NCBI RefSeq assembly: GCF_018977255.1
Contig: NW_024704749.1
Span: forward strand, 2,976,001 to 3,040,000
From: Callorhinchus milii
Lineage: Eukaryota
DNA length: 64,000 nt
Direction: 5' to 3'
Position numbers and translations under genes: made by a program. This document shows, piece by piece, positions 15,557 through 62,592 of this stretch. A model generated the notes under the pieces. That model was given only the letters and a program-made list of their open reading frames with translations. It was not told where the DNA came from and searched no databases. Within the stretch, counting starts at the first letter, position 1, and every line of letters starts with the position of its first letter.

Positions 15557-15617
15557 TTCTCCTTAAGAACCATCAGGTGATGTAAGTCCAATTAAATTCT
15601 TAAATTATGCAAATCAC
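15557..15617 (-). promoter_or_regulatory. Octamer promoter, cluster B (octamer 15607-15614)
   Basis: Same conserved block as cluster A. Confidence 0.85.
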
Positions 15618-16066
15618 CATCCAGGTTGCATCGTCCAATACGAGTCCTGGTTTCAAACAGCATACTGAAGATCATGCAGATTTGAGCCATTTTATTGCCC
15701 ATTTTCGAAAAGATATTTCATGGTAATATTGCATAACATTTCACCCTGAAGACTTTGATTGTATGAAGCTCAGTTTCATTTCCATTATGAAATAAAGATT
15801 TTTTAAATGGCACAAACTTAATTTTTTTACAGAATCATGGAAACGTCTTCCATTACATATCTTATTCAGATATTTCATGGGTTTCTACCACGATCGCTTG
15901 CCATGTTTCACAGAGAATTATCTTGTTGAGGAGCTTGTTCTATGTTGGATAATTTGTTGGTGCAAATGTTTCATCATTTCTTTCAGTTACAGATCACACA
16001 TCTGACCCATTACAGACCTGCACAGAAAGTAACACTACAAAGCTGTTGCCAGCGTTACTCAAACTA

Positions 16067-22750: not shown

Positions 22751-22811
22751 GTCATTGCAAAAATTTAAACAGAGTCTAAGAATAATGCAACATTTGTGCT
22801 GTCGATGCAAG

Positions 22812-26766: not shown

Positions 26767-27089
26767 TTAGGTACAACTAAATCTGGCGATGCTTCTTTCG
26801 ATCGGAGTGGCCAGAGTCTGGTGTTTGACCACACAGGAATACAGGTCGTGTTACTCCCACTTGGAGGTTGGCAGAGTCAGATAACTGCTCACACTGTACG
26901 TGTTGTCCGCCTGCTGTTTGATCGCACTCGTTTCAACACTTTCACTTCTGGCACCGCCATCCACAATCCACTCGACCTCCACAGCTCCCGGGATAAAATC
27001 ATTCACCAGACACACCAGGGTCGCCTTGCTCTTTGCTGTGATTTGATCTGGTGAAGGCGGAAGGACAGTCACCGAAGGGCCCCGTGGGT
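26767..27089 (-). pseudogene. IGLC: Pseudo C exon without VJ
   Basis: Full 323-nt C homology, but the acceptor AG is mutated to AA (27090-27091) and TCA is changed to TAA at 26851-26853. Confidence 0.92.
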
Positions 27090-27460: not shown

Positions 27461-28323
27461 AAATATTTGTCTTAAAAACAGAAGTTGCTGGGAACATGCA
27501 GCAGGTTAGGTCGTATCTATGGAGAGAGGAAAGTTAGTTAATGTTTCAGGTCAATAGCCTTTTGTCAGAACATTTGTATAGAGCCTTGGATAAAAGATAA
27601 AATAAAATAATCCTCAATTGGTTCCAGAATATTGGAAGCCTCTTAAACCACTGAATATAATATATTGTTCCCTTAAGGCCATATTTAAGTGCTCACCTGG
27701 ATTGTTAGCTCAAAGACCTGATGTGGAGCTTGAACCCACAGCCTTGTTGTCTTGTGACGTAAAAGTCATATGTCCAAAGAATTCTCTTCATGGGTCGGAG
27801 GTCCCAAGTATCAGCAGGTGGGGGGGGGTGGGGGGCTCCTATGGTCTATATCTGTAGTCCAGGATGAAGCAGCGAGGTGGAATTTTAGTGAAAAGGGAAA
27901 TGGCTGCAGTGAAGGAGGGTTCTGGCCTATGCTGAACTGTCACTGAGCAACAACAAAAACATGCATTTATGTAGCATTCCTCATGTACAATAGCACCTGG
28001 AAGTGCTTTACAATGAAAACAACAACAAATTCTATTTGTATAGGGCCTTTCACGTTGGGAGGACATCCCAAGTCACTGGATCATCAGAGATTTGGATCCC
28101 AACTTGGTTAGAGGGCAGGGAGCGTAGCAATATGAGAGTGACCAAAGATGCAGTCAAAGAGGATGGTCGTGAGATGGGCCTTGACGGAGGCAAGAGAGGG
28201 AGCAAGGCAAATGGACTGCAGGAGAATTACAAAGGACAGGGCAGAGAGGCTGAAGGCCCGATGTTGATGGTGGGGTGGACCTGGTGGGGAAATGGAGCAA
28301 GTGTACTAAGCGGAGGGAGTGGA

Positions 28324-29545
28324 CAACAACAACAACAACAACAAGATTCCATTTATAGAGCGCCTTTCACGTCAGGAGGACGTCCCAAGGCGCTGCACAG
28401 TTGGGTCATGACCCGAGCAGGGGGGAAATGGTCAGGGTGAGGGGAGGGAAGGGAGGGAGAGAGGAGGGGGAAATGGTCAGGGTGAGGGGAGGGAAGGGAG
28501 GGAGCGAGGAGGAAGAGAGTCGAGAGGGGAGCTGAAGGCACGGTCAAAGAGAAAGGTTTTGAGACCGGCCTTGAAGGAGGAAAGGGAGGAAGCAAGGCGA
28601 AGGCACTGGGGGATGGAGTTCCAGAGCCTCGGGGCTGAGAGGCTGAAGGCCCGACCACCGATAGTAGGGCGGTTGGGGCGGGGGACGTGGAGCAGACCGG
28701 AGCCAGAGGAACGGAGGGTACGGGCAGGTAGGTAGGGGGATAGTAGGTTGGAGAGGTAGGAGGGAGCAAGGCCGTGAATGGCCTTGTAGGTGAGGATGAG
28801 GATCTTGAAATCAATCCTCTGGGGGATGGGGAGCCAGTGGAGGCGAGCGAGGGTGGGAGTGATGTGGTCCCGAAGCCTGGTGCGGGACAGTACACGAGCT
28901 GCAGAGTTCTGAATGACCTGCAGCTTGTGGAGGGAGGTGCGGGAAGGCCGGCGAGGAGAGAGTTCCCATAGTCCAGCCTTGAGGTGACAAAGGCGTGAAC
29001 CAGGGTTTCAGCAGCGTGAGGGGTGAGGTAGTGCCGTAATCTGGCGATATTCCGGAGGTGATGGAAGGCGGTGCCAGTTGTGGTGCGGATGTGAGGGAGA
29101 AAGGACAGCTCAGGGTCGAACAAAACGCCGAGGTTCCTGACTGGCTTTGAGAGGTGGAGAGTGCAGCCTTGGATGCTGATGGTGTCAGAGCCTGAGGTGC
29201 GGAGGCGCTGACGTGAGCCAATCAGGAGGGCCTCGGTTTTTCGCACGTTGAGCTGAAGAAAGTTGTCTCTCGTCCAGGACTCGATGTCGGACAGGCAGGC
29301 TGTCAGGACATCGGTGGTCGTGGAGTTGAGAGTAGAGGAGGAAAGGTAGAGTTGGGTGTCATCCGCATACATGTGGAAGTTGACCTCATATCTGCAGATG
29401 ATGTCACCAAGGGGGAGATACTGAAGAGGAAAGGACCAAGGACAGAGCCCCAAGGAACAACACACCATGTGATGCGGGAGTTCATTGAAGATGGGAGGAG
29501 AAGCCAGCCATTCATGGAGACAAAGTGGAGACAGTGTGAAAGGTA
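28324..29545 (-). mobile_element. L2 LINE 3' portion, same young family as 19868-22750
   Basis: HMYADDTQLY motif, highly similar 3' ORF and UTR, (caa)n tail on the plus strand. Confidence 0.92.
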
Positions 29546-29862
29546 ATAATAATAATAATAATAATAATAATCCTTGCATTTGATATAGCGCTTTTCACGT
29601 CGGGAGGACGTCCCAAAGTGCTTCACAGAACACACTGTAAAGTGAATTGACTGTATATTTGTGGGCGAACGCGGCAGCCAATTGTGCACAGCAATGTCCC
29701 ACAAACAGTCATGGATTGAAAATGACCAATTTATTATTGTTTTTGGTTTTGGAGGGATTATTATTAGGCTCTGTGTGGAGTAAGGAAACTTGTCCAAGGT
29801 TTTGCCCTGACCTGCCGGGGATTGAACTCAGGTCTCTCGCTTGCAAAGCGAGTGCTCTAACC
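29546..29862 (-). mobile_element. Deu-domain SINE abutting the truncated L2
   Basis: Lacks the first ~18 nt of the head; tail joins the L2 5' truncation point. Confidence 0.88.
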
Positions 29863-31631: not shown

Positions 31632-31656
31632 NNNNNNNNNNNNNNNNNNNNNNNNN
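31632..31656. other. Assembly gap (25 N)
   Basis: Run of N. Confidence 1.
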
Positions 31657-32699
31657 GTTTATATTTTCTCGAGCAATTATTATCAGGCGTGTGGGCTAGG
31701 AAACGTGCCCAAGTTTCACCCTGCTGGGAATCAAACCCAGGTCTCTCACTTGCAAAGTGAGTACTCTAACCACTGACCTATAGGGCTCCACTTATTTCTT
31801 TTTCCACGGAGGGGATTTTTCTAGAGACACTTGTGGAAGGAAAAAGATAGGTTTGAGTAGACATTATGAACGCGTGACTTGAGCATATTTTGAATTAGAC
31901 AATGATAAACGAATAGCAATTTCTCACGTCAAATATTAAGTGAATTTATTATTGTAAATCTATATTTCCTTCCAGGGAACAGAGATCCAATGGCATCAAA
32001 ACACAAGCACTCAATTCCCATCTCCTGGACCTGTTGCCCGCGCTCTAATGTGATGCACTATGGAACGAGAATTGAAAAGGAGATTTGTGTTGCTCAAACC
32101 CGCTGATGGAAGAAAAGTGCTGATTCCACCAGTGTTCCCACTCGCTTGTATTGAATTCTGAGTATGCATTGCTCCCAATACATTTTTGTTACACGTAAAT
32201 GTTAAATGGCTTTTACATGCGTAGAAATTCACAACAGCCTTCATTTAAAAAAAATAATCCTGCAGTACATGTATTCTGTTAGAAATTAAATACATGGATA
32301 ATAATACTTTTGAGAAAACCTTTTCATAACAGGAGACATTCACGATGCTTCATTGAATATACTAGGTATAGGTTGCAGGCAAATGTGGCAGTCAATTTGA
32401 GCATAGTAATATCTCCCAAACAGCCTTGAAGTGAATGGTATAATATATATTAGGGAAGTTGGACAGGACACCAGATGTTTTCTTCTTCATTTGCATTGTG
32501 ACATGTGATCCTGAACGTTCACATGAATAAGAAAATGTGATTTTGTTCAGTCTCATCCAAAAATGGCACCTCCAACAATGCAGGGCGTCCACATCATGAT
32601 ATTGCAGCAGGTAATTTACTCAAAGCTTCAATTTTGTTATCGTTTTTAAATTACTTACATTAAATGCTTTTACATTATACTTTTTATCCTTTTAATATA

Positions 32700-35320
32700 T
32701 CTTCTATCTCTTTAATATCTCTGTCTCCACCCTCAACTCCAGGACAGCTTGTGTCCTCACCGACTGCATATCCGTCATCAAGTCTTGGTCAAGGGAGAAC
32801 CTTTCTGCAACTCAACTTCAGCAAGACTGCACCTCGGGCGTTGGCAGCATCAGCATTCATGGCTGCACATTCATCCTCACAAAGCCAGTCTGGAACCTGG
32901 GTGTCTTCTTTGACAAGCCACAGATCATTCAAATCTTTGGAGCTCGTGTACTCTCGTGCACCAGGCTGTGACCCCATCACTCCCACCCTCACCTGATTCC
33001 ACTGGCTCCCCATCCTCAGAGGATCGAATTCAAGATCGTCGCCCTCACTTTCAAGGCCATCCATGGCGTTATCCCCTCCTACGTAGCTGACCTGGTGATG
33101 CTCCCCAACCTGCCCGCTCCTCCATTCAGCAGCCTCCGGGCTGCTCCTGTCTCCCAGCCGGCCCACCCTACCATCAGTGGCCGGGCTTTCAGCCTCTCTG
33201 CCTCCACAGTTTGGAACTCCATCTCACGGTCCCTGAGCTCGCTCCTACCTTGCCTCCTTCAAGGTTGGTCTCAACACCCTTCTCTTCGATTGTGCCTTTA
33301 GTTGCCCTCCACCTCTTTGAATTCCCTCACTCCCCCATGCTCGGGTCCAACTCCTGTCTCTTCAGCATTTTGGGACGTTCTCCAGTCGTAAATAATTTTA
33401 TTGTTGCTGCTGAAGGAAGAAAAGTACTCAAGTGTAGTTTTCCATTAGCGTTCACAGTCGCTTGTATTGTATGTGCCGATCCAATGCACGTTTGTGATTG
33501 GTAAATATCAAATGGCTCGAAAATGCAGAGAATCATAGAGCAGACTTCATTTTAAAAAGGCCTCCTACACTGTATGTATTGTGCTAAAAATGAAATACAT
33601 AGATAATAATACTTATCAAGGCATCCCCATCATTGCATTGCAGCAGTTAATTTACTCAGGTCTTCAGTTTTGTTAGTATTATTTTGGGAACAGTTCAAAT
33701 TTCCACTTATTCATAGGATATAGAAACATGTCATTGTAGGTAAGAAGCATGCCATTCAACTCATCCTATATATACCCTCATTTTGAAGGGCGGTTTATTT
33801 ACAAATAATCATGCATTCCAGCTTTTCCTCTGTATTCCTCCATGTTTTTATTTTTCAGTGATCAAGTCCTGGATGAGAGCTGACTTACTCTATCAAAAGT
33901 TGAAAGGGTGGGACCCTCTTGCTTGACTTCAGTCAGCATATTCTCACTCAGGCTCTTACAACGTCGCTATTGGCATATGGACTTCATTCATCTATCGATT
34001 CTCATGTTTGACCCTCATCCCACCTTTATCCCCATATTGGTGCTACGAATCATTCTGCTTTTCCACACATTGGCTGCATTGTCCAACTCTGCCACTGCTC
34101 TCTCCCTCATTCTGCCAAACCCTAATTCATGCATTGATCACGTCCAGGCGGGTGGAATTTATGTTAACCCTCTGCTAACTGGATTTTCCAACTCTTCCCT
34201 CCATAGGTTAAAGATTATTCAGAACTCTGCAACTATCCCTCACCAAGCTCCATGAGGCAATCACCCCCAACCCAAAGAGGAACACGCTGAGGATCCTCAA
34301 CATTATTTTAAAAGCACTCAACTTTATTGGTCCTTAACACCTTACCAACATCTGCTCTATTCGCTTAATACTGGTCTGCATTACCTTCAACCGACCCACC
34401 ATCAGCAGGCAGGAATTCAGCCTTTTTTTCCCACCTTCTGGAACTCCATTCAGAAATCTCTACACCTTACCCTGCCTTCCTTCCTTCAAGGCTCATCTCA
34501 AGTCCTATTTCTTTGACAATACCTCGGTCATCATCCACCCCATCAACTTTGAGCCCAAATCCCTAGCAAACCCTTGAGTGTGCAACATTTTGTGATGTAA
34601 TCCAACATGAAAAAAACTATATAAACGCAATTTGTTGTTGCAGTTGTGTGTCAAGATCAATGGCTTGTAAGAAGCATGCCATTCAGTCCATCCTATATGT
34701 ACCTTCATTTTGAAGGGCAGATGATTTACAAATATTCATGCGTTCCAGCTTTTCCTCTGTATTCCTCAATGTTTTTATTTTTCAGTGATCAAGTCTTGGT
34801 TGAGGGATAACTTTCTCCAGTTAAAAGTTGAAAGGGTGCAGACCCTCTTGCTTGGCTCCAGTCAGCACATCCTCACCTCATACCTGATAACGTAACTATT
34901 GACAAATGCACTCTTCACCTCACAGAGTACCGATTCTTGCTGTCATGTTCGACCTTCATCCATCCTTTATCTCCATATCGATGGTACGAACCTCTCGGTG
35001 TTTCAGCACCTTTCACGACATTGTCCAATTCTGCCACTGACTCTCCCCTCATGCCGTCAAAACCCTCACTCATGCATTCATCACGTCCTGGCTCGTCTAG
35101 GTAACCCCCATCTCTTCCCAACTCTTTCCTCCATAGGCAAAAGATAATTCAGCACTTTGCAACTATCCTGCAACCAATCTCCATGAAATGATCAACCACA
35201 ACTCCACAGAGCTTTGCTGGCTCTCTGAACCCAGGAGGAACAAGTTCAAGATCCTCATCCTTACAATGAACACCCACTACTTTATACTTAGCAGCTTAGC
35301 GGGCACTGGTCTGCACCATG
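32700..35320 (+). mobile_element. Series of old L2 3' fragments (duplicated at about 44520-47180)
   Basis: Repeated degenerate FLQLNFSKT / WLRDNYLQL / LHWLP motifs. Confidence 0.7.
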
Positions 35321-36290
35321 TCGACCACCCACCAAAAGCAGAAAGCCATGTTATTCTCGGTAATGGAGAGTACGCAACCCAGTAAAATTAAACGGATAAA
35401 AATGTATAGTATCTTCCCTTTGGTGGCCAAACAGGATAATCTATAATGAATAAGTGATGCAATATACTATCAAATTGGATGTCTGTCATGATTTTTATCT
35501 GCTAATCTGGGCTGACACTGCAGTCCATTACGAAGGTAGTGGTGCATTTTTGCCCCTAAACTCTAGAACTCCATTCTGGAATCTATTCCCCTTCCCTGTC
35601 CTCCGTCGGTGAATGCTAACCTCAACTCCTTTCTCTTTGATTGTACCTTGGTCATCCTTCCATTTCATCCCCGTTGATTTAAATCGCAGCTCCGGTACAA
35701 AGTTTGATGGGCCATCTCTACGTCATCCCAATATGAAACACATTACATAAATGATTTTTTATTGCAGTTTTCAGTCATTATCAGTGACTTTTATTGCGGT
35801 GGAGCGCCTGCCATTACGACTAACCTAATTTGACAGTCTAAAATATACTGTTTGGAGGTATCTCATCACAAAGGAATCCCCACTAACCTCATTTCTCCCA
35901 CACCCTCCGCCTGCTGGAAGGGTTGACACGAGTTGGAGATTCAGTGTCCAACAAGCACAGTTTTCAACATTCATTGGGTAAACAGCTAATACCAGGAAGT
36001 CCATCTGAACCTGTGTATTACCATGTGAAACGCTTGAGAGCATCACTATCATCCTCCTGACCAAAGTGTTTCCAAACTTAACACTAACAACGGAGAATAC
36101 ACTACCTGGTATAATTAAACTTCTGATGTGCATATGTCCTCAGGTGGCACCAAACAGGATATTCTACAGTAAATAATTCATACAATCTAATACTAAATTG
36201 AACATCTGTCATGATTTCTATCGAATAACCAGGGCTGTCATCAATGAGGTTAGTGGTGCATTATCAGAAGTTGCATTTTATGAATCATGA

Positions 36291-36571
36291 ATAATAAATA
36301 ACAATAATCCTTGCATTCAATATAGCGCTTTTCACGCTTCTCGACATCCCAAAGCGCTTCACAGAATTTACTGTAAAGTGAATTGACTGTATTTGTGGGC
36401 GAATGCGGCAGTCAATTGTGCACAGCAGAGTCCCACAAACAGTCATGGATTGAAAATGACCAATTTATTTATTTTTTTTGTTTTTTGGAGGGATTATTAT
36501 TAGGCGTGTCGAGTAAGGAAACTTGCCCAAGGTTTCGCCCTGTCTGGAATTGAAATCAGGTCTCTCACTTG
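36291..36571 (-). mobile_element. Deu-domain SINE (duplicated at about 48165-48451)
   Basis: Family match, 5'-truncated. Confidence 0.85.
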
Positions 36572-36774
36572 CCCTCCACGCAGAGAAGCGTCTCAGGGCG
36601 CTTGATTTCTACTGCTACAAATTGCTGCTCTAATATCTACTGTGTTTGGATGCAAAAACAGTCACTACACGTAGGAACCAAGTGAGTTGCTTTCATAAGA
36701 GCAGAAAATGAAACTGTCACTCATTCACAATTGTTGTCTCTGGAGAGTGAGGAAACTGTTTATTTATTGTGAGA

Positions 36775-36790
36775 CAGTGCCCTCTACGGA
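36775..36790 (-). promoter_or_regulatory. CTCF-like motif, second copy
   Basis: Identical 16-mer about 2.3 kb 3' of the C exon at 39084. Confidence 0.5.
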
Positions 36791-39083
36791 TCGAGTGAGT
36801 GAGTTGAAATGATTCTCCTGCTCCTCGCTTTGTTCTGGTCTTTCAAAATACGAGTACTTGGGTAGAAATACAAGATGGGTCAAAAGGTACTCTATTAAAC
36901 TATTATATGAAAGTTGTCAACTGTTAATTCATATTTAACTTTGAGAACCGCTTTCTGTAGTTCAATAGACCCAGGGGTGGAATTTCTACTGACATATTAG
37001 CAAAGATCACGGAAGTTGATTTCTTTATTTCTCATGTGAACAGGAAGAGGGATAACACTCCTTGTTTGATGCTGCTGACATCTTTACAATTATGCCGATA
37101 CCAAAGAAAAAAAATGATAATACTTGAACATATATAGTTATATTATTATCGATAAAGCGATATCCCAAATATCTTTTTCTAAAAACAACACTTTATGCCG
37201 TATCGAAATGTATTCTCAGTGGGCTACAGATATTGCGACCACTAAAATCAAATGTAAAGTGTTCCTGAAAGTTGGCCAAAATAACCTGTTGAATTCTCCC
37301 CCCCCCCCCCCCCCTCACCTCAAAGAACAATAACATTTACAGTTTTCGACTCACAAATTACGCATGATTCAGAATGCATAAACATAGATGTCGGATCTGG
37401 TTGGTTCTCATAACCATTAATAAATGCAAATTTGCAGGTTAAGAGAATAGTAAACTGTATCTTGTGAATGTAGAAAGCACTCCGCTTACTGTCGGTTGTG
37501 TTGAGCGATGCAACAATCATGGGTCTTATTGGTTCCTTCAATTGTACTATTCAGTTCTAATGAATTAATTCTCCCGATTCAAACATAAATAGCGATTATT
37601 ACACTATCCACGTTTAGGGTTAATTTCATATGAGATTGATAAAGTTTACGATTATAGAAGATTATTGAAAAAATGTTGTAAGCTACTGTACTACAAATTA
37701 CCGGCTCATCCTGGAATATTGCAGATATGTTGTTGTCTAGTTATCCTCTATCATATTTTCAATTAAATAATCCAATTTTATACTTATTCAAATAATGATC
37801 TACAACGATACAGAGAATAATAACGATACAGCTTTGTAGGTACAACAAGGGGAAAACATGAAAGAATGCAAACTTGAGCTGTTGAAATAAACTGCAGTGA
37901 AAACTGCAGGTGTTAAACCGTCATCGAAATGCTGCAAAGAGGAAGTTGGTTTCTCGACAGCGGGATCGGGGCACGCTGGTACCCACAAGATGGTGGGGGG
38001 GGGGAGGGGTGGGAGCGTGTGGGAGGTGGGGTCGGGGGTGGAACATTCTCCGTTAAATCCTCCATGAGCTCCATGGGGGAGGGTACATTTTCTCGTTTCA
38101 TTTGCATCTGATTGCCTGATGGACAGCAGCTTTTAAATATGATGTTACTCCTTTTAGCAATATAAAAGTTTAGTTCTATAGACATTGGTGGGCTGCAGAG
38201 GGAGGGGGCAAAATTAGTTCAGTGAATGAGCTTCTAAACCATCGGTGGATGTTTGCCAATTTTGGCGCAGAATATTTCACACGTGTTTCGTCTGTAAGAC
38301 GGTTCATGATTTCATTTTTAACGTTGTGCAATATTTTAAATTCACATGACTTTTAATTCATTTGCAGTTAAATTTCAAAGTTGGTTGTTTTTCACGAACC
38401 TCATGAAACGGCTCTCAGATAACGACCGCAATTAACAATTTTCCCAATTTCTGCGCAATAAGTTTAAATTTTAGGACGCAATAGTTTGGGGGCTCCAATT
38501 AATTAAACGCAATTACAGTCGCTGACGCCTCTGTGCCACACTGGAGAAGATGTCAGAGGCAGGACAGCAAGATGCTGAATGTGTTATTCGTGTTCCTTTG
38601 TGTGTGTATAATTTTATGGTGGCATACTGCTTCCCGTCTTGACGGCATTCTGTAGATTTGCCATTTTATTGCATACTTAACGTTTATCTAATATTATAAC
38701 AATAATAATAAAAATAACTTATTGTTTGGGAAAAAGATGATATCAAAAAACAAAATGGAAGAAAAGAGACGATGCACAGGACAATGGAATAGACATTTTA
38801 TTAAGCTGTGGCATATGGTATTTCTGAATTTACACAATGGGTTTGATCATTGACGCGTGACACATTGCAAGATACAACCATTCAATTCCAGAAATTGTCA
38901 AATATTATTCTTTCCGGTTTTAAGGCAATATTGAAACATCTAAAGCTATTTACTTCGGTTGGGAAATTTATCGAAAGTGTTTACAAAGCGAATCTGTTAC
39001 TCATTTGGACATTCCTGGTAAAATGAACTTCAATTTCAAATACCACAAAAGTAGATATTCGATTAGCGCTCCACATTCTTGAT

Positions 39084-39404
39084 TTAGGTACAACTGGATC
39101 GGGCGATGCTTTTTTCGAGCGGAGTGGCCAGACTCTCGTGTTTGACACACAGGAATACAGGTCGTGTGACTCCCACTCGGAGGTTGGCAGAGTCAGATAA
39201 CTGCTCACACTGTACGTGTTGTCCGCCTGCTGTTTGATCGCACTCGTTTCACACCTTGACTTCTGGCACTGCCATCCACAGTCCACTCGACCTCCACAGC
39301 TCCCGGAATAAAATCATTCACCAGACACACCAGGGTCGCCTTGCTCTTTGCTGTGATTTGATCTGGTGAAGGCGGAAGGACAGTCACCGACGGGCCCTGT
39401 GGCT
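39084..39404 (-). pseudogene. IGLC: C exon of cluster B' with two 1-nt deletions (pseudogene or consensus error)
   Basis: 321 nt versus 323. Missing bases near 39251 (TT to T) and 39146 (GG to G). Acceptor, stop and AATAAA intact. Confidence 0.8.
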
Positions 39405-39626: not shown

Positions 39627-39960
39627 ACAATTATAATAATAATAATGATAATGATAATCCTTGCATTTAATATAGCGCTTTTCACGTCGGGAGGACCTCC
39701 CAAAGCGCTTCGCAGAACACACTGTAAAGTGAGTTGACTGTATATTTGTGGGCGAACGTGGCAGCCAATTGCGCACAGCAATGTCCCACAAACAGTCGTA
39801 GATTGAAAATGACCAATTTATTATTGTTTTTGGTTTTGGAGGTATTATTATTATGTGTGTGGAGTAAGGAAACTTGCCCAAGGTTTCGCCCTCTGCCTGG
39901 AATTGAACTCAGGTCTCTCGCTTGCAAAGCGAGTGCTCAACCACTGAGCTGCAGGACTCC
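39627..39960 (-). mobile_element. Deu-domain SINE in the J-C intron of cluster B'
   Basis: Absent from the paralogous intron of cluster B near 13485. Confidence 0.88.
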
Positions 39961-41431
39961 ACGGGTGACGACTGATAGACAAATGTCTGGGGGCTGCTCA
40001 TCATATACACTTCATTATTGTACATACTATCATGAGTTGGCGGATGAGTAGTTAAATGGGGACCACATGTTCAAATATTCCTGTACTGAAGAAATTAAAT
40101 CTTGCAATCGACAGAAATAACACCAGACACTAATATATCCCGTCACAGGGAGTATATGACGGGAACACCTGATTGAAAGCGCAGTAACACATTGTTGTTA
40201 TTTCAATCCATTGTTTCCTTTCACAGAAGAGAGAACGTGTAGCAAATGGATATAAATATCTGGCTGTGTTTTCAATTGAACACCCAATTGCGACTAATTC
40301 AATGTAAATATAAATATGCATTATTCGGCTTTAAATCCAATTATGCGCAATCTGACCTTCCTTGACAACGGAACTGTCTAATCTAATCTAATCTTTGAGT
40401 GATGTTTAGGATTTGAAAAATCGCCATTCACTAATGTAGGTCGGTTGTTACTGATACATCAAAATGTTATTAGTTATCAATACAATCAGAATATTAGTAA
40501 TTCTCAAGATCAAATTGAATCTTTTTGCAGCGACTATAACATATGGATAAAAATAACAGCCAAATGCTTTCACCCCAACTAACCAGTTCCACCAATGATT
40601 TTTTTTACAGGCACCGGCAGCAGATAGTAAGAAGGTGAAAATTTCTTTTCACCAAACACTGTACACAGAAAATCATTTTAGGAGCACAATCAGATTCCAA
40701 TATTTCAATCACTGAGGAGAGTAACTTCACAAGTTTTCAATAATTAATTGCTACCGTATTAACTGAATTTAGTTCCTAATTAATGGTGGTCTGGAGTTAC
40801 GGTTAATACATAGGTCGAGATCCCTTTAACATCACAACTAATAGGAAACAATGAGGTTAATTTCCAAAGGAGAAAATATATTTTGTGTGTTGAGCGGATT
40901 CAGCGTCTCTCGGACTGTGTCTTCTCTCAGCGATGATCATATCTGAACAATTACAACAACTTATGATGGAACATGTGACATTACTGAATCTTTGCTGTTC
41001 GTTGTAATTGTGCTCCCCTTAGTGACATGAAACACGGAATTGGAAGAAAATAAAACATTTTAATAAACCAGAAAATCTGCGGAAAATGTTCAAATAGAAG
41101 CGATTGTTAACGGGAGGAATAATATTTCCACGTCTGAGACTTTCTACATTTGCTGGTTTTCTGCACTATCCGTCCTAATTCTTCACAGATTCTCATTTAA
41201 ACTCAGGATTCGCGTGTTTGATTCTTCAAAATATCCGATTCCCAAATAAAACGTTTATCATTGCGATGATTACGGCCACATGCAAATATTACCAGAACCG
41301 AGTGAAACAGAATCCAACACAGATAAACATACAGTTATACCTTGGAAAATTTGAAGGAGAACCAGATCAAAATAATTATGGAAAAGTAGAAACAACCACA
41401 TGGAAAGTGTACAATGTCAAATGTAACTTAC

Positions 41432-41760
41432 TTTTCAAACTCAGCTTCGTCCCTTTACCGAAAGTAAGATCTGCTTTACAGTAATAATCGGCGGCTTCCT
41501 CCGGTTGCACACCCCTGATGGTTAAATACATGGCGTTGCTCGATGATCCACAGAACCAGTGAATCGATCAGGAATTTCCGGACCTCTGGTGGAGTCCTCA
41601 TACCAAACAAACAGAGGGGCGCCGTCAGGCTTCTGCTGGTACCAACTCGTGTAATAGCTGCCGATGCTGCCTCCGGACATGGTACAGGTGATCTTGACGG
41701 TGTTTCCCGGGGAGGATGAGATGGATGGTGGTTGAGTCAGGGTAAAAGCTCCGGCTGTGC
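41432..41760 (-). pseudogene. IGLV: Germline-joined VJ exon of cluster B', short CDR3, one 1-nt deletion in FR3
   Basis: 329 nt = 351 - 21 - 1. With the base near 41546 restored it reads [19 protein letters not shown]...[76 protein letters not shown]. Splice sites intact. Confidence 0.85.
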
Positions 41761-41850
41761 CTGGAGAGATAAAAATTGATAAATAGGTCAAATTGTTGAA
41801 CTGTACAAAGTGAGTTCAATTCAAATCAATGCGGATTCCGCAGCGCTTAC

Positions 41851-41899
41851 CATGGAGACACAGGAGCAAAGCGGCCAGAACTCGGAGCCAATTGCCCAT
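41851..41899 (-). CDS. IGLV: Leader exon, cluster B'
   Basis: MGNWLRVLAALLLCLH+G, donor GTAAGC. Confidence 0.9.
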
Positions 41900-41974
41900 C
41901 GTGAACAATTTGATGAAGATCAGAGAGATGAGGGATGTTCCTGACAAAATCCGCTTTTCTGCTTCTTTCTAAAC

Positions 41975-42035
41975 TTCTCCTTAAGAACCATCAGGTGATG
42001 TAAGTCCAATTAAATTCTTAAATTATGCAAATCAC
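41975..42035 (-). promoter_or_regulatory. Octamer promoter, cluster B' (octamer 42025-42032)
   Basis: Same conserved block as the other clusters. Confidence 0.85.
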
Positions 42036-43299: not shown

Positions 43300-43622
43300 A
43301 ATAATGACAATCCTTGCATTTGTTATTGTACTTTTCACGTCTTCGAAACGTCTCAAAGCACTTCACAGAATAGACTATAAAGTGAATTGACTCTATATGT
43401 GAGGGTGAAATGCGACGGGCATTTCAGCAGTATCCCACACAGCAGGATCCCATAAACAGTCTTGGTATGCAGTGAATAATTTATTATTGTTTTATTTTCT
43501 CGAGCAATTATTATCAGGCGTGTGGGCTAAGGAAACGTGCCCAAAGTTTCACCCTGCTGGGAATCAAACCCAGGTCTCTCACTTGCAAAGTGAGTACTCT
43601 AACCACTGACCTATAGGGCTCC
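43300..43622 (-). mobile_element. Deu-domain SINE (older)
   Basis: Family match; its 5' part is duplicated at 31657-31790. Confidence 0.8.
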
Positions 43623-46600
43623 ACTTATTTCTTTTTCCACGGAGGGGATTTTTCTAGAGACACTTGTGGAAGGAAAAAGATAGGTTTGAGTAGACATTAT
43701 GAACGCGTGACTTGAGCATATTTTGAATTAGACAATGATAAACGAATAGCAATTTCTCACGTCAAATATTAAGTGAATTTATTATTGTAAATCTATATTT
43801 CCTTCCAGGGAACAGAGATCCAATGGCATCAAAACACAAGCACTCAATTCCCATCTCCTGGACCTGTTGCCCGCGGCTCTAATGTGATGCACTATGGAAC
43901 GAGAATTGAAAAGGAGATTTGTGTTGCTCAACCCGCTGATGGAAGAAAAGTGCTGATTCCACCAGTGTTCCCACTCGCTTGTATTGAATTCTGAGTATGC
44001 ATTGCTCCAATACATTTTTGTTACACGTAAATGTTAAATGGCTTTTACATGCGTAGAAATTCACAACAGCCTTCATTTAAAAAAAAATAATCCTGCAGTA
44101 CATGTATTCTGTTAGAAATTAAATACATGGATAATAATACTTTTGAGAAAACCTTTTCATAACAGGAGAACATTCACGATGCTTCATTGAATATACTAGG
44201 TATAGGTTGCAGGCAAATGTGGCAGTCAATTTGAGCATAGTAATATCTCCCAAACAGCCTTGAAGTGAATGGTAATTATATATTAGGGAATTGTTGGACA
44301 GGACACCAGATGTTTTCTTCTTCATTTGCATTGTGACATGTGATCCTGAACGTTCACATGAATAAGAAAATGTGATTTTGTTCAGTCTCATCCAAAAAAT
44401 GGCACCTCCAACAATGCAGGGCGTCCACATCATGATATTGCAGCAGGTAATTTACTCAAAGCTTCAATTTTGTTATCGTTTTTAAATTACTTACATTAAA
44501 ATGCTTTTACATTATACTTTTTTATCCTTTTAATATATCTTCTATCTCTTTAATATCTCTGTCTCCACCCTCAACTCCAGGACAGCTTGTGTCCTCACCG
44601 ACTGCATATCCGTCATCAAGTCTTGGTCAAGGGAGAACCTTTCTGCAACTCAACTTCAGCAAGACTGCACCTCGGGCGTTGGCAGCATCAGCATTCATGG
44701 CTGCACATTCATCCTCACAAAGCCAGTCTGGAACCTGGGTGTCTTCTTTGACAAGCCACAGATCATTCAAATCTTTGGAGCTCGTGTACTCTCGTGCACC
44801 AGGCTCTGTGACCCCATCACTCCCACCCTCACCTGATTCCACTGGCTCCCCATCCCTCAGAGGATCGAATTCAAGATCGTCGCCCTCACTTTCAAGGCCA
44901 TCCATGGCCTTATCCCCTCCTACGTAGCTGACCTGGTGATGCTCCCCAACCTGCCTGCTCCCTCCATTCAGCAGCCTCCGGGCTGCTCCTGATCTCCCAG
45001 CCGGCCCACCCTACCATCAGTGGCCGGGCTTTCAGCCTCTCTGCCTCCACAGTTTGGAACTCCATCTCACGGTCCCTGAGCCTCGCTTCCTCCCTTGCCT
45101 CCTTCAAGGTTGGTCTCAACACCCTTCTCTTCGATTGTGCCTTTAGTTGCCCTCACACCTCTTTGAATTCCCTCAATCTCCCCCATGCTCGGGTCCAACT
45201 CCTGTCTCTTCAGCATTTTGGGACGTTCTCCAGTCGTGAATGTAATTTTATTGTTGCTGCTGAAGGAAGAAAAGTACTCAAGTGTAGTTTTCCATTAGCG
45301 TTCCCAGTCGCTTGTATTGAATGTTGTGTATGTGCCGATCCAATGCACGTTTGTGATTGGTAAATATCAAATGGCTCGAAAATGCAGAGAATCATAGAGC
45401 AGACTTCATTTTAAAAAGGACTCCTACACTGTATGTATTGTGCTAGAAATGAAATACATAGATAATAATACTTATCAAGGCATCCCCATCATTGCACTGC
45501 AGCAGTTAATTTACTCAGGTCTTCAGTTTTGTTAGTATTATTTTGGGAACAGTTCAAGTTTCCACTTATTCATAGGATATAGAAACATGTCATTGTAGGT
45601 AAGAAGCATGCCATTCAACTCATCCTATATATACCCTCATTTTGAAGGGCGGTTTATTTACAAATAATCATGCATTCCAGCTTTTCCTCTGTATTCCTCC
45701 ATGTTTTTATTTTTCAGTGATCAAGTCCTGGATGAGAGCTGACTTACTCTAGTCAAAAGTTGAAAGAGTGGGGACCCTCTTGCTTGACTTCAGTCAGCAT
45801 ATTCTCACCTCAGGCTCTTACAACGTCGCTATTGGCATATGGACTTTTCATCTCACATCTCATGTTTGACCCTCATCCCACCTTTATCCCCATATTGGTG
45901 CTACGAATCATTCTGCTTTTCCACACATTGGCTGCATTGTCCAACTCTGCCACTGCCTCTCCCCTCATTCTGCCAAAACCCTAATTCATGCATTGATCAC
46001 GTCCAGGCGGGTGGAATTATGTTAACCCTCTGCTAACTGGATTTTCCAACTCTTCCCTCCATAGGTTAAAGATTATTCAGAACTCTGCAACTATCCCTCA
46101 CCAAGCTCCATGAGGCAATCACCCCCAACCCAAAGAGGAACACGCTGAGGATCCTCAACATTATTTTAAACGCCCTCAACTTTATTGGTCCTTAACACCT
46201 TACCAACAATCCTGCTCTGTTCGCTTAATACTGGTCTGCATTACTTCAACCGACCCACCATCAGCAGGCAGGAATTCAGCCTTTTTTTGCCACCTTCTGG
46301 AACTCCATTCAGAAATCTCTCCACCTTACCCTGCCTTCCTTCCTACAAAGCTCATCTCAAGTCCTATTTCATTGACAATGCCTCGGTCATCATTCCACCC
46401 CATCAACTTTGAGCCCAATCCCTAGCAAACCCTTGAGTGTGCAACATTTTGTGATGTATATCCAACATGAAAAACACTATATAAACGCAATTTGTTGTTG
46501 CAGTTGTGTGTCAAGATCAATGGCTTGTAAGAAGCATGCCATTCAGTCCATCCTATATGTACCCTCATTTTGAAGGGCAGATGATTTACAAATATTCATG

Positions 46601-49600
46601 CATTCCAGCTTTTCCTCTGTATTCCTCAATGTTTTTATTTTTCAGTGATCAAGTCTTGGTTGAGGGATAACTATCTCCAGTTAAAAGTTGAAAGGGTGCA
46701 GACCCTCTTGCTTGGCTCCAGTCAGCACATCCTCACCTCAGACCCTGATAACGTCACTATTGACAAATGCACTCTTCACCTCACAGAGCCAATACCGATT
46801 CTTGCTGTCATGTTCGACCTTCATCCATCCTTTATCTCCATATCGATGGTACGAACCGCTCGGTGTTTCAGCACCTTCACGACATTGTCCAATTCTGCCA
46901 CTGACTCTCCCCTCATGCCGTCAAAACCCTCACTCATGCATTCATCACGTCCTGGCTCGTCTAGGTAACCCCCATCTCTTCCCAACTCTTTCCTCCATAG
47001 GCAAAAGATAATTCAGCACTTTGCAACTATCCTGCAACCAATCTCCATGAAATGATCAACCACAACTCCACAGAGCTTTACTGGCTCTCTGAACCCAGGA
47101 GGAACAAGTTCAAGATCCTCATCCTTACAATGAACGCCCACTACTTTATACTTAGCAGCTTAGCGGGCACTGGTCTGCACCATGTCGACCACCCAACCAA
47201 AAGCAGAAAGCCATGTTATTCTCGGTAATGGAGAGTACGCAACCCAGTAAAATTAAACGGATTAAAATGTATAGTATCTTCCCTTTGGTGGCACCAAACA
47301 GGATAATCTATAATGAATAAGTGATGCAATATACTATCAAATTGGATGTCTGTCATGATTTTTATCTGCTAATCTGGGACTGACACTGCAGTCCATTACC
47401 GAAGGTAGTGGTGCCTTTTTGCCCCTAAACTCTAGAACTCCATTCTGGAATCTATTCCCCTATCCCTGTCCTCCGTCGGTGAATGCTAACCTCAACTCCT
47501 TTCTCTTTGATTGTACCTTGGTCATCCTTCCATTTCATCCCCGTTGATTTAAATCGCAGCTCCGGTGCAAAGATTGATGGGCCATCTCTACGTCATCCCA
47601 ACATGAAACACATTACATAAATGAATTTTTTATTGCAGTTTTCAGTCATTATCAGTGACTTTTATTGCGGTGGAGCGCCTGCCATTACGATTAACCTAAT
47701 TTTGACAGTCTCAAACATACTGTTTTGGAGGTATCTCATCACAAAGGAATCCCCACTAACCTCATTTCTCCCACACCCCTCCGCCTGCTGGAAGGGTTGA
47801 CACGAGTTGGAGATTCAGTGTCCAACAAGCACAGTTTTCAACATTCATTGGGTAAACAGCTAATACCAGGAAGTCCATCTGAACCTGTGTATTACCATGT
47901 GAAACGCTTGAGAGCATCACTATCATCCTCCTGACCAAAGTGTTTCCAAACTTAACACTAACAACGGAGAATACACAACCTGGTATAATTAAACTTCTGA
48001 TGTGCATATGTCCTCAGGTGGCACCAAACAGGATATTCTACAGTAAATAATTCATACAATCTAATACTAAATTGAACATCTGTCATGATTTCTATCGAAT
48101 AAACCAGGGCTGTCATCAATGAGGTTAGTGGTGCATTATCAGAAGTTGCATTTTATGAATCATGAATAATAAATAACAATAATCCTTGCATTCAATATAG
48201 CGCTTTTCACGGCTTCTCGACATCCCAAAGCGCTTCACAGAATTTACTGTAAAGTGAATTGACTGTATTTGTGGGCGAATGCGGCAGTCAATTGTGCACA
48301 GCAGAGTCCCACAAACAGTCATGGATTGGAAAATGACCCAATTTATATATTTTTTTTTTTGTTTTTGGAGGGATTATTATTAGGCGTGTCGAGTAAGGAA
48401 ACTTGCCCAAGGTTTCGCCCTGTCTGGAATTGAAATCAGGTCTCTCACTTGCCCTCCACGCAGAGAAGCGTCTCAGGGCGCTTGATTTCTACTGCTACAA
48501 ATTGCTGCTTCTAATATCTACTGTGTTTGGATGCAAAAACAGTCACTACACGTAGGAACCAAGTGAGTTGCTTTCATAAGAGCAGAAAAATGAAACTGTC
48601 ACTCATTCACAATTGTTGTCTCTGGGAGAGTGAGGAAACTGTTTTATTTATTGTGAGACAGTGCCCTCTACGGATCGAGTGAGTGAGTTGAAATGATTCT
48701 CCTGCTCCTCGCTTTGTTCTGGTCTTTCATAAAATACGAGTACTTGGGTAGAAATACAAGATGGGTCAAAAGGTACTCTATTAAACTATTATATGAAAGT
48801 TGTCAACCTGTTAATTCATATTTAACTTTGAGAACCGCTTTCTGTAGTTCAATAGACCCAGGGGTGGAATTTCTACTGACATATTAGCAAAGATCACGGA
48901 AGTTGATTTCTTTATTTCTCATGTGAACAGGAAGAGGGATAACACTCCTTGTTTGATGCTTGCTGAAGCCTTTACAAATATAGCCGATACCAAAGAAAAA
49001 AATGATAATACTTGAACATATATAGTTATATTATTATCGTTAAAGCGATATCCCAAATATCTTTTTCTAAACAACACTTTATGCCGTATCGAAATGTATT
49101 CTCAGTGGGCTACAGATTTGCGACCACTAAAATCAAATGTAAAGTGTTCCTGAAAGTTGGCCAAAATAACCTGTTGAATTCTCCCCCCCCCCCCCCCCCT
49201 CACCTCAAAGAACAAATAACATTTACAGTTTCGACTCACAAATTAACGCATGATTAAGAATGCATAAACATAGATGTCGGATCTGGTTGGTTCTCATAAC
49301 CATTAATAAATGCAAATTTGCAGGTTAAGAGAATAGTAAACTGTATCTTGTGAATGTAGAAAGCACTCCGCTTACTGTCGGTTGTGTTGAGCGATGCAAC
49401 AATCATGGGTCTTATTGGTTCCTTCAATTGTACTATTCAGTTCTAATGAATTAATTCTCCCGATTCAAACATAAATAGCGATTATTACACTATCCACGTT
49501 TAGGGTTAATTTCATATGAGATTGATAAGTTTACGATTATAGAAGATTATTGAAAAAATGTTGTAAGCTACTGTACTACAAATTACCGGCTCATCCTGGA

Positions 49601-49924
49601 ATATTGCAGATATGTTGTTGTCTAGTTATCCTCTTATCATATTTTCAATTAAATAATCCAATGTTTTATACTTATTCAAATAATGATCTACAACGATACA
49701 GAGAATAATAACGATACAGCTTTGTAGGTACAACAAGGGGAAAACATGAAAGAATGCAAACTTGAGCTGTTGAAATAACTGCAGTGAAAACTGCAGGTGT
49801 TAAACCGTCATCGAAAGCTGCAAAGAGGAAGTTGGTTTTCGACAGCGGGATCGGGGCACGCTGGTACCCACAAGATGGTGGGGGGGGAGGGGGGAGCGTG
49901 TGGGAGGTGGGTCGGGGGTGGAAC
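43489..49924 (+). repeat. 6.4-kb direct duplication, copy 2
   Basis: Matches 31657-38044 and ends at a gap. Confidence 0.95.
48659..48674 (-). promoter_or_regulatory. CTCF-like motif, third copy
   Basis: Identical 16-mer in the duplicated segment. Confidence 0.5.
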
Positions 49925-49949
49925 NNNNNNNNNNNNNNNNNNNNNNNNN
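49925..49949. other. Assembly gap (25 N)
   Basis: Run of N directly after a G-rich tract. Confidence 1.
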
Positions 49950-50425: not shown

Positions 50426-50748
50426 TTAGGTACAACTGGATCTGGCGATGCTTTTCTCGAGCGGAGTGGCCAGAGTCTGGTGTTTGACCACACAGGAATA
50501 CAGGTCGTGTGACTCCCACTCGGAGGTTGGCAGAGTCAGATAACTGCTCACACTGTACGTGTTGTCCGCCTGCTGTTTGATCGCACTCGTTTCAACACCT
50601 TGACTTCTGGCACTGCCATCCACAGTCCACTCGACCTCCACAGCTCCCGGGATAAAATCATTCACCAGACACACCAGGGTCGCCTTGCTCTTTGCTGTGA
50701 TTTGATCTGGTGAAGGCGGAAGGACAGTCACCGAAGGGCCCTGTGGCT
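50426..50748 (-). CDS. IGLC: Ig lambda-like C exon, cluster A' (intact)
   Basis: 323 nt, open, ends ARSSCT*; acceptor ttccttccAG. Confidence 0.96.
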
Positions 50749-52921
50749 CTGGAAGGAAAAGATTTTGTACTTAGATCATGTCCATTATTTGATAAGACGA
50801 AGGAAAGTTGAAAACTAAATATCAAATCTTTGTATCAAATACTGCAACGTGTTCTTGGTCTGTTGATAATGATCTTGAACAGTGACAATGTCCGTCTATA
50901 AAGATATTAAATCAGTGTGAAGCGGTTATTGTTGTTAAGGGTTGCTCACCAAACGCTCTGTAGTTTATTATACTATCTCCAGATTATCACGATCCCATTT
51001 ACGAAATGAAGGACTGCAATCACCAGAATCGACAACAGACACTAAAACCAGGTCACAGTGAATACTGCCGGAGCAGCTGATTGACAGCGCAGTAAAACTT
51101 TCGGATTATTAATGATATCTCTGTGAAAGCTCATTCACACGATAGAAAATTTCTCCCACCAAAATGCAGTCAATTCACTTCACGGTATACTCTGTGAAGC
51201 GCTTTGAGACGTCTCGAAGACGTGAAAAGCGTTATGCCAAATTCAAGGATAAAACTCAATGAAAATTAAAGTAAATATAAAATAAATGCTGCTAACTGAC
51301 AATGTTTGCAACTAAACGCTCCATTCCGATGAATTCTCTCCAAACATCCAACTGTCGCCTCTATTTCCAACACTGCCCAATTCTGGGAAGAAATGTGTTT
51401 GAGTACTTTTTGGAGATTGAATAATCGCTATACAATGGCTGGGCACAAACTATACTTTCTCTGATGTCCTTTCCTGAGTCGAGGTGGAACGGGATTCAAG
51501 ATTGACGGTTGTGCGGATAAACAATGACGGATTTCAACAAACTGGAAGATGGTCCAGAATACAAATAAAAATTCACACTTGTACAGAGCCTTTCACCGTG
51601 ACCACTTACAACCAGATGATCATCATAATAATAATCATTGCATTGCTTATAGCACCTTACCACATCTTCGAGACGTCTCAAAGCATTTCACAGAAGATAC
51701 TGTGAAATGAATTGACTGTATATTTGGCGAAAGAACACGAAAAGCATCAGAATCCGAAACTGGTTTGTGTACAATCTCCTGGTTCAAAACATAACGAAAT
51801 GAAACGAGCTATTTATAAATAAAAGCAGAACATTGACAGTTATAAGGATAACGAATCCGTTCCAATAGGTAGCCTTCGGAATTACAGCTGATCGGGATTA
51901 TTGTAAACCCATAATTGTTTTATTGCACGCCCTATAAAAACAATCAGTCTTTCGACAAAAAAGTTTTAGAGACACGAACGGCAGTTATTGAAAACCTGGA
52001 AATCCGGGGGAAAAGGAAAGGGGTTCGCTTTGCTCAAATGTTGTATGAAGGAAAAGTCAATAATTAAGCGTTTGAGCAGCAAAATAAAGCAAAGGTTCAG
52101 CAGCTGGAAAGAATGAATGCCAATTTCACAAAGTTTCATAGGGCGCTTGAAGTATATTCCATTGCATTTATCATAAATATCACTGCGCGGTAGACAGGAA
52201 ATAATCAAGTTACATTTCCATTATTGAGATAACATTTTTCTTTCATTTCTGCTTTGACCAGATTGAGCCGCCGCTCAACAGTCTGTGCCTTCACTCAGCG
52301 CCGATTCACATCTGAACAATTACAGCAACTTGTGGGGAAACACTTGTGACATTACTGAGTCTCTGCTGCTGATTACAGTGGTGCTCCCCTCAGCGACATC
52401 AAACACCGAATCCGGAGAAAATAAAACATGTTAAACAATCAAATATCCGAATACAACTCCGCCGAAAGAAGATAATAGATATATCGACTAATGGGAAGAA
52501 TAACACAGAGGTTCTTTGCACAAGTCTAATTTCTATCAAAATTCGCATTAATTCACTGAGACGATCATAACATTGGAATTGTTCTCAAATAATGGATTAG
52601 TTGCTTATGTGAAATACTGGTCAGAGAAACCTTTCTCAGAGTAATTCCCGGTCATATGGGTAATAGTTGAAGACTGTTTCTGGTTCCCTTGGAAGTTTAA
52701 CGTCTTGAAATATTCAAGTATTTCTACGATGTACTTCTACAAACATTTCTACGATGTTTTTTCATCTGAGATTGAACTCCTCACCAATCGGTTCAGCAAT
52801 CCTGAATAAATCTGGTACCAGGAATTTGGTTGTCTAATGCAAATCAAAATAATTATTGGAAACAACAATATTTAGCTTGAACCCACCACGTGCAAAGTGT
52901 AGAATGCGAAAGATCACTTAC

Positions 52922-53272
52922 TTTTCAAACTCAGTTCACTGCCTTTCCCGAAAAAGAAGTGATACGGACTGCTCTTATCCCTGGCACCACAGGAGTAATC
53001 GGCGGCGTCCTCAGCTTGCACACCGCTGATGGTTAAATGCACGGCGTTGTTCCCTGAGTCCGCAGAACCAGAGAATCGATCAGGAATCCCCTGAGGTTTG
53101 CCGTTGTAACTTGACCAGAGAAGCACAGGGGCGCCGTCAAGCTTCTGCTGGTACCAGCTGGTGTAGTAGCTGCCGATGCTGCCTCCGGACATGGTACAGG
53201 TGATCTTGACGGTGTTTCCCGGGGAGGATGAGATGGACGATGGCTGAGTCAGGGTAACAGCTGCGGTTGTGC
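52922..53272 (-). CDS. IGLV: Germline-joined VJ exon, cluster A' (intact)
   Basis: 351 nt, 5 substitutions versus cluster A; [26 protein letters not shown]. Confidence 0.95.
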
Positions 53273-53481: not shown

Positions 53482-53542
53482 TTCTCCTTAAGAACCATCA
53501 GGTGATGTAAGTCCAATTGAATTAATGAACTATGCAAATCAC
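53482..53542 (-). promoter_or_regulatory. Octamer promoter, cluster A' (octamer 53532-53539)
   Basis: Same conserved block as cluster A. Confidence 0.85.
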
Positions 53543-62280: not shown

Positions 62281-62592
62281 TTCTCGAACTCAACTTGATT
62301 ACCGAACAAGAAGTTATATGCAATGCGGCCATACTGGTTACCACAGTAGTAATCGGTGGCATCCTCCGGTTGCACACCACTGATGGTTAAAGTGCATAGA
62401 GGATTCCACAGAACCAGTGAATCGAACAGGAATGCCTTCAGCTATGCTTATGTTCTCATGCCAAAGAAACACCTGGGAGCTGCCAGGCTTCTGCTGGCAC
62501 CAACATGTCCAATAATTGCCCGCCCTCCTGGCTCAAGACACGGACATGGTTGATCTTGATGGCATTTCCCGGGCCGGTTGAGTCAGGGTAAC
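62281..62592 (-). pseudogene. IGLV: Decayed germline-joined VJ exon with no leader and no C
   Basis: Fragments VTLTQP, PGNAIKI, WCQQKPGSSQVFLWHEN...GIPVRFTGSVES, TISGVQPEDATDYYC-GNQYGRIAYNFL-FGN. Several deletions including the first Cys; donor GTTAGT. Confidence 0.88.

Follow-up and report, generated by a model that had tools for sequence, protein, structure and literature searches.

The lambda clusters of the window

The window analysed here, a stretch of 64,000 nucleotides from Callorhinchus milii (contig NW_024704749.1, positions 2,976,001 to 3,040,000), carries immunoglobulin lambda light chain clusters that are named below by their approximate position in kilobases. The clusters near the one at 41k are 90-100% identical to C. 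milii lambda proteins, and the spliced protein of the 15k cluster is identical to XP_042193085.1, whose locus (L004) corresponds to window positions 12443-15981 at 100% identity; this match places the window at MU249839.1:2,976,001-3,040,000 of assembly GCA_018977255.1. The 41k cluster has the layout of a germline-joined lambda (type II/NS3) cluster: its leader is split, about 2 kb of intron separate J from C, and one C1-set exon, frameshifted here, makes up the constant region. Its parts are listed with their identity to VJ15k, the VJ exon of the 15k cluster, and to L001, an intact paralogue described below:

42025-42032, minus strand: promoter octamer ATTTGCAT, about 126 nt upstream of the leader ATG
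41851-41899, minus strand: leader exon, 49 nt, placed from alignments; MGNWLRVLAALLLCLH plus the first base of Gly, then a GT donor
41761-41850, minus strand: leader intron, 90 nt, 97.8% identical to L001 and 82% to VJ15k
41432-41760, minus strand: fused VJ exon (VJ41k), 329 nt, with AG acceptor and GT donor and without RSS
41432-41462, minus strand: J-derived FR4, FGKGTKLSLK plus 1 nt, 31/31 identical to VJ15k and L001
39639-39962, minus strand: tRNA-derived SINE in the J-C intron (Rfam tRNA match 39892-39954)
39084-39404, minus strand: C-lambda exon, 321 nt against the normal 323; Pfam C1-set matches the pieces

V and J are contiguous in the one exon, FR3 runs through CDR3 into FR4, and neither the heptamers CACAGTG and CACTGTG nor a nonamer was found in 41300-41950; the description of VJ41k as a germline-joined lambda VJ, made in an earlier reading of the sequence only, is therefore borne out. 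The exon measures 329 nt, compared with 351 nt in the intact 12-residue paralogues and 330 nt in the intact short paralogue; it is 91% identical to the proteins P0004 and P0014 over the V region, and its Pfam V-set match corresponds to the piece 5' of a frameshift. The SINE in the J-C intron is private to 41k, being missing from L001 and from the 15k cluster. Equivalents of the promoter octamer lie at 2500-2507 (VJ2k), 15607-15614 (VJ15k), and 53532-53539 (VJ53k). The octamer is enriched in the window (16 observed vs 5.8 expected), and a second copy of ATTTGCAT sits about 150 nt inside the J-C intron of three clusters (41280-41287, 1795-1802, and 52837-52844, minus strand).

Where V-J clusters are joined in the germline, diversity comes from the presence of many clusters and from somatic mutation. 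Since V and J are already fused, the junction is inherited like any other coding sequence.

The window holds other pieces as well. An orphan C-lambda exon (26773-27072, minus strand) has an open frame and 90% protein identity to other C exons. It shows AA in place of AG at the splice acceptor and has no VJ exon upstream; the expected VJ position is taken up by LINE-like sequence (28.3-31 kb) and an N run. Another C-lambda exon (10365-10616, minus strand) is truncated 5' by the N run 10617-10646; over 84 residues its protein matches C13k/C50k at 100% identity, and no VJ exon can be assigned to it. LINE-type fragments at 20000-22700 (plus strand), 28300-29600 (minus strand), and 57800-60540 (minus strand) match reverse transcriptase and endonuclease/exonuclease/phosphatase just under the Pfam cut-offs, and 21612-22752 and 28326-29464 are inverted copies of each other (94.5% identical). 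The stretches between clusters also contain at least eight tRNA-derived SINE heads.

A junction of five codons

The junction of VJ41k and the VJ exons with which it is compared are as follows:

41478-41480, minus strand: conserved Cys codon TGT, read from the sequence
41463-41477, minus strand: CDR3 AAAGCAGATCTTACT, 15 nt, KADLT in the local frame
41462-41451, minus strand: TTC GGT AAA GGG (TTCGGTAAAGGG), FGKG
1885-2160: VJ2k
14987-15262: VJ15k
52917-53192: VJ53k
62301-62520, minus strand: VJ62k

Read along the minus strand from 41480 to 41451, the sequence is TGT AAAGCAGATCTTACT TTCGGTAAAGGG, with exactly five codons between the FR3 Cys and FGxG, as in the five-residue CDR3 class. The spacing from Cys to FGKG is 15 nt in VJ41k and 36 nt in VJ2k, VJ15k, VJ53k, and VJ62k, and a MAFFT alignment of the five VJ exons has one 21-column gap in CDR3 of VJ41k. 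YYC-KADLT-FGKG is thus present as first described, 21 nt below the other four exons; their 12-residue CDR3s were also described correctly, as was the closeness of VJ41k to cluster B on both sides of the junction, where 41/42 positions of FR2 and 31/31 of FR4 are identical to VJ15k. The fourth of these exons, VJ62k, is a degenerate pseudogene: its reading frame switches, FR1, FR3, and FR4 have deletions, and no leader can be recognised. The CDR3 of VJ62k (GNQYGRIAYNFL) resembles that of an intact gene model on the same scaffold, P0011 (GAQYAHSPYNFL).

The short junction had also been called in frame, which holds locally, because 21 is 7 x 3. It does not hold for the exon as a whole: YYC-KADLT-FGKG lies in another frame than leader, FR1, CDR1, FR2, and CDR2, and that upstream frame ends at a TAA (41524-41522).

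Probable decay of the 41k cluster

Is VJ41k then part of a working gene? The exon had been taken as intact, a view that the following lesions contradict:

41546-41547, minus strand: site of a missing C in FR3, GGA^TCATCG where the paralogues have GGACTCATCG; frameshift
41522-41524, minus strand: premature TAA in the leader/FR1/FR2 reading frame, from the frame 1 translation
39252/39251: 1-nt deletion between these positions, C exon
39147/39146: 1-nt deletion between these positions, C exon

The FR3 frameshift is supported by tblastn with an intact paralogue, which splits VJ41k into two frames, and the two deletions in the C exon bring a further frameshift and premature stops, so the path from leader through VJ to the end of C is broken by one frameshift in FR3 and two in C. 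The exons of 41k hold three indels in about 700 nt and the other lambda exons none in about 2,400 nt (Fisher P = 0.011); none of the other seven lambda exons in the window has an indel. Between 41k and L001 there are 9 indels and 101 substitutions in 3,051 nt, a ratio of about 1:11; the FR3 deletion is the sole indel within the VJ exons, where the indel rate equals that of the flanking non-coding sequence. This excess of indels in exons, together with an ordinary ratio of indels to substitutions, is the reason for reading 41k as a real pseudogene. Furthermore, VJ41k has replacements at three otherwise conserved FR3 positions (H to Y, S to R, and D to E). Judged on its sequence, the 41k cluster is probably a pseudogene in this assembly, unable to make a light chain.

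It is improbable, by comparison, that 41k is functional and that its three single-base deletions are consensus errors. The frameshift calls rest on one assembly, in a stretch bracketed by repeats and flanked by gaps: a 6.4-kb direct repeat (31657-38044 and 43489-49924, 97.6-97.8% identical, period 11,832 bp) lies on both sides of the cluster, its left copy beginning directly after the N run 31632-31656 and its right copy stopping before the N run 49925-49949, and copy number and consensus quality between the repeats may be uncertain. The cluster also retains its promoter octamer, splice sites, and conserved Cys and Trp residues, and two of the three deletions fall in dinucleotide runs. Against this, the FR3 deletion is outside any homopolymer, the ratio of about 1:11 is that expected of real divergence, the seven other lambda exons of the same window are free of indels, and the copy also has the altered FR3 positions and the private SINE; nor is there a KADLT cDNA or gene model among the matches listed.

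An intact paralogue with a junction of the same length

If 41k is a pseudogene, did its junction arise in it or come with it? A gene with a junction of the same length is already annotated in C. milii: XP_042193580.1 (P0004), "immunoglobulin lambda-1 light chain-like", a protein of 233 residues with the junction YYC-KASDT-FGKG. Its locus, L001 (MU249839.1:3,075,486-3,087,251), is oriented like 41k and follows it on the scaffold at a distance of about 65 kb, and its junction reads TGT AAAGCAAGTGATACC TTCGGT, 15 nt as in VJ41k. The two genes share the cluster layout, identical FR1 and FR4, and the first two CDR3 codons (AAA GCA). They differ in the last codon (ACC in L001, ACT in 41k) and in the middle of CDR3, which is AGTGAT in L001 (KASDT) and GATCTT in 41k (KADLT); unlike 41k, L001 is intact from leader to C. 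Outside the exons they are 98% identical in the upstream flank, 97.8% in the leader intron, 95% in the J-C intron, and 96.7% over 3 kb, and each has transposon insertions that the other lacks. Differences between them are concentrated in the CDRs (10/81 positions vs 8/297 in the framework, P = 0.0012).

Near-identical flanks and one junction length in two loci argue that the 15-nt junction predates the duplication that gave rise to them; it was almost certainly inherited from their common ancestor. The claim of an independent V-J joining event in the VJ41k copy accordingly falls. The 41k cluster is an ordinary member of a known gene type, of which an intact copy is already annotated in the same genome. 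The probability that somatic rearrangement or chimeric assembly produced the short junction is practically negligible, and nothing specific speaks for it: the same junction length occurs at a second locus of the same assembly and in gene models from the genomes of seven other species, and in lambda clusters V and J are not separate segments that could rearrange (PMC5192425, PMC4279169).

CDR1 tells of smaller exchanges. At window positions 41650-41640, 41k has SYYT, like the distant 2k and 53k genes, and L001, which is 97% identical to 41k, has SHFT, like VJ15k; this mosaic, in which CDR1 of L001 resembles VJ15k and that of 41k VJ2k, suggests short conversion tracts between clusters.

The C. 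milii lambda cDNA entries listed include no short-junction cDNA, and the C. milii lambda cDNA proteins among the matches listed are all of 237-242 residues, none of 233; even the intact L001 may therefore be little used. Expression across C. milii lambda clusters appears very uneven among the deposited cDNAs listed, in which the 2k/53k type of chain dominates (a 90%-identity cluster with 108 members).

Origin of the fifteen nucleotides

The observation that the 15 nt are not a clean deletion product of the paralogous CDR3 stands. A single deletion with point mutations is rejected, as any placement of a single gap matches at most 7/15 positions in VJ41k or 8/15 in L001. Deletions-only affine alignment of the VJ41k 15-mer to the 36 nt does no better than shuffled 15-mers (P = 0.12-0.41), and a deletion-only origin of either 15-mer from 36-nt or 27-nt CDR3s, the latter from a neighbouring nine-residue cluster, gives P values from 0.04 to 0.76, uncorrected. 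A nearby donor, whether of templated filler or of a conversion tract, was likewise sought and rejected: no 9-mer or longer piece of the junction recurs elsewhere in the window or L001, and a 23-mer at the junction, with up to 3 mismatches allowed, matches itself alone. The palindrome AGATCT within KADLT was considered as a trace of P nucleotides and discarded, because L001 does not share it; it is therefore a later change and no signature of the original join. Where VJ41k departs from the 12-residue genes is sharply defined: divergence starts at the last base of TACTGTG, which is TACTGTA in VJ41k.

Could the junction nonetheless record a RAG-mediated joining of split V and J segments at 41k, independent of the 12-residue joins? 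Joining of this type in the germline is documented for the nurse shark kappa-type NS4 genes (Lee et al., 2000, PMC2193156), and the 36-, 27-, and 15-nt junctions found between identical FR3 and FR4 on one type of backbone, described in the next section, differ as independent joins would. Every other line of evidence makes such an event at 41k very improbable. All lambda (type II) genes are germline-joined in every species studied, and no split lambda gene is known in any of them (PMC5192425, PMC4279169); the papers found on classes of lambda CDR3 length, or on the lambda locus of C. milii, state only that all lambda genes are joined. The window contains no split lambda gene and no RSS, and 41k has no close split progenitor with RSS and is not nested among split genes. 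Its nearest flank relatives are all joined, and the junction is not private to 41k but shared with L001. Finally, the 36-nt CDR3 of VJ15k is colinear with, and 83% identical to, those of 2k and 53k, which makes the joined state ancestral. A break repaired at CDR3, the other event once proposed for VJ41k, did not take place in this copy; it may have taken place in the ancestor of both short copies, a possibility considered next.

One backbone, three junction lengths

Trees of non-coding sequence (650 nt upstream, the leader intron, and 300 nt of the J-C intron) place 41k among clusters with longer junctions. Two of these lie between the window and L001: L005, a nine-residue cluster (MU249839.1:3,053,915-3,059,332), and L006, a 12-residue cluster (MU249839.1:3,066,827-3,072,372). 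The tree is ((2k,53k),(15k,L005,L006,(41k,L001))); both main splits and the pair of 41k and L001 have 100% support. The nearest flank relatives of 41k (15k, L005, and L006) are thus already joined, so a fresh joining of split segments at 41k is unsupported; and because the 36-nt CDR3 is colinear, without gaps, and 83% identical between the B-type (15k, L006) and the distant A-type (2k, 53k) backbones, the ancestor of both backbones was itself already joined.

One backbone family (L005, L006, L001, 15k, and 41k; 82-92% identical in non-coding sequence) therefore carries CDR3s of three lengths: 36 nt (GARESGSPYNFF, GAGDSNSPYHYF), 27 nt (FAGVSGVYQ), and 15 nt (KASDT, KADLT). No simple indel relation connects them, and FR3 and FR4 are nearly identical across all three types.

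Does the backbone tell the history of the junction? The C exons compared are these:

12946-13248: C exon in the window
50432-50731: C exon in the window
39084-39404: C exon of 41k
L001:7444-7766: C exon of L001

They are about 99% identical (differing by about 1-2%) between clusters whose introns are 50-88% identical, and FR1 of VJ15k and VJ2k matches at 76/77 positions beside an intron that is 83% identical. C exons far more alike than the introns that adjoin them make exon homogenisation evident, and the pattern indicates concerted evolution of exons, presumably by gene conversion, within the lambda locus. Backbone trees can therefore not date CDR3.

This bears on a different origin of the short class, in which the CDR3 of a joined 12-residue cluster of the B type broke, in the Callorhinchus or holocephalan lineage, and was remodelled to 15 nt before the duplication into 41k and L001, the five-residue classes of other species being independent look-alikes. 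The break may have been repaired with a loss of about 30 nt and the addition of filler, or the remodelling may have begun with a cut at TACTGTG, a cryptic heptamer with which FR3 ends. Such remodelling is a serious alternative, if unlikely overall, and several observations are in its favour: (i) in the non-coding tree, the short pair nests among backbones that otherwise, the outgroup included, have the colinear 36-nt CDR3; (ii) the 15 nt cannot be derived by deletion alone; (iii) divergence from the 12-residue genes starts at the last base of TACTGTG; and (iv) five-residue genes occupy at least five positions in protein trees, described below, with no shared framework signature. On the other side, the nine-residue L005 nests in the same way, yet the motif that its class shares with elasmobranchs makes a recent origin unlikely; homogenisation of exons at the locus makes backbones a poor guide to CDR3 history; no donor of filler was found in the window or L001; and, among the matches listed, exactly five residues recur in 8 species and intermediate lengths are nearly absent.

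Five-residue CDR3s in sharks and rays

CDR3 could be parsed in 107/120 lambda proteins among the matches listed, and the lengths are discrete: 5 (10 sequences), 8 (16), 9 (42), 11 (27), and 12 (9), with 6 (one), 10 (two), and 7 (none) rare or empty in the same set. Five-residue CDR3s occur in seven elasmobranchs, which with C. milii makes 8 species among the matches listed:

Heterodontus: YAASI
Cetorhinus: FTAKT
Carcharhinus plumbeus: YAART
Heptranchias: LVSRT
Pristiophorus: FAGRT
Pristis: YVAKI, YAART
Narcine: FAART

The one elasmobranch gene examined at the DNA level, from the horn shark (L002), is germline-joined, with a 15-nt CDR3 (TGT TATGCAGCTAGTATC TTTGGTAAA). Its flanks cannot be aligned with those of an 11-residue cluster on the same chromosome, which argues that in the horn shark the short class is an old, separate lineage. 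The 15 nt of C. milii match the horn shark junction at 8/15 positions (P about 0.015, uncorrected for about 12 tests). At the protein level, the short CDR3s of C. milii share Ala at position 2 with most of the elasmobranch sequences and Thr at position 5 with several, and nothing else; the Thr that ends the short C. milii CDR3 is found in elasmobranch genes but not in other C. milii classes. A search for class-diagnostic framework residues of five-residue lambda chains found none.

A tree of frameworks with CDR3 lengths mapped onto it, of the kind proposed earlier, was built from proteins with CDR3 removed. Some short genes do pair, those of Heterodontus, Cetorhinus, and Pristiophorus together (85/91) and those of Narcine and Pristis (99/94); the trees are otherwise poorly resolved and group by taxon overall, so that the five-residue state requires at least five changes. 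As a means of dating the short class, the framework-only tree was set aside, since it cannot separate recurrent origin from concerted evolution.

The longer classes offer another comparison. The nine- and 12-residue classes have the junction motifs SSG[IV]Y and SSPY, which are common to C. milii and elasmobranchs, and are therefore unlikely to be young in C. milii. By analogy, the short class of C. milii may also be old; the match to the horn shark junction and the final Thr are weak evidence for this. Whether it is older than the split between holocephalans and elasmobranchs is evenly balanced: the class may be an old junction type or may have come about by remodelling in the Callorhinchus lineage.

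A proposed history of the junction, and its known counterparts

The account that we favour, and consider likely as a whole, is that 41k is a decayed tandem duplicate of a short-CDR3 lambda cluster, with an inherited and probably old class of junction. The ancestor of 41k and L001 would already have carried the 15-nt junction, and tandem duplication would have copied the cluster with its junction. Thereafter, 41k would have acquired the 1-nt deletion in FR3, the two deletions in the C exon, the three replacements in FR3, and the SINE in the J-C intron. The five-residue junction would be one of a few discrete, probably old lambda classes (5, 9, and 11/12 residues), each of them probably the product of an old junction-forming event in the germline, and the classes would have persisted as the remaining cluster sequence became homogenised within each lineage. 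This reasoning can be carried further, though more tentatively: it is possible, if somewhat doubtful, that lambda CDR3s are a few very old "junction cassettes" (5, 9, and 11/12 residues), fixed before holocephalans and elasmobranchs parted and since preserved by selection, or moved by short-tract conversion, amid homogenised frameworks, C exons, and flanks, with decaying clusters such as 41k as possible reservoirs or donors.

Taken alone, 41k alters the picture little, being a pseudogene copy of a gene type already annotated. The value of the locus lies in three unrelated-looking junctions (36, 27, and 15 nt) on one backbone and in length classes that recur in sharks and rays. If the classes are relics of separate ancient joins, they document germ-cell RAG activity much more ancient than that seen in the nurse shark, and would offer a natural test of how hard-wired CDR-L3 lengths are upheld under concerted evolution.

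How does 41k compare with joined genes known elsewhere? The nurse shark NS4 genes R4, R7, and others resemble it in being germline VJ fusions in a cluster-type locus, with junctions that vary between joined copies. Unlike 41k, they coexist with split progenitors that have RSS, and their joins can be reconstructed, with trimming and P nucleotides (PMC2193156); for 41k, there is no split lambda relative from which to reconstruct a join. Closer counterparts are the sandbar shark AAC59643 (YAART) and the horn shark L002 (YAASI), which, like 41k, consist of leader, fused VJ, and a single C exon, and have a five-residue CDR3 followed by FGKG, with Ala at position 2 and Thr or Ile at the last. Their protein identity to the C. 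milii short chain is only about 65%, and their settings differ: the flanks of the horn shark gene are deeply diverged from those of other classes, whereas the short class of C. milii shares its backbone with nine- and 12-residue clusters.
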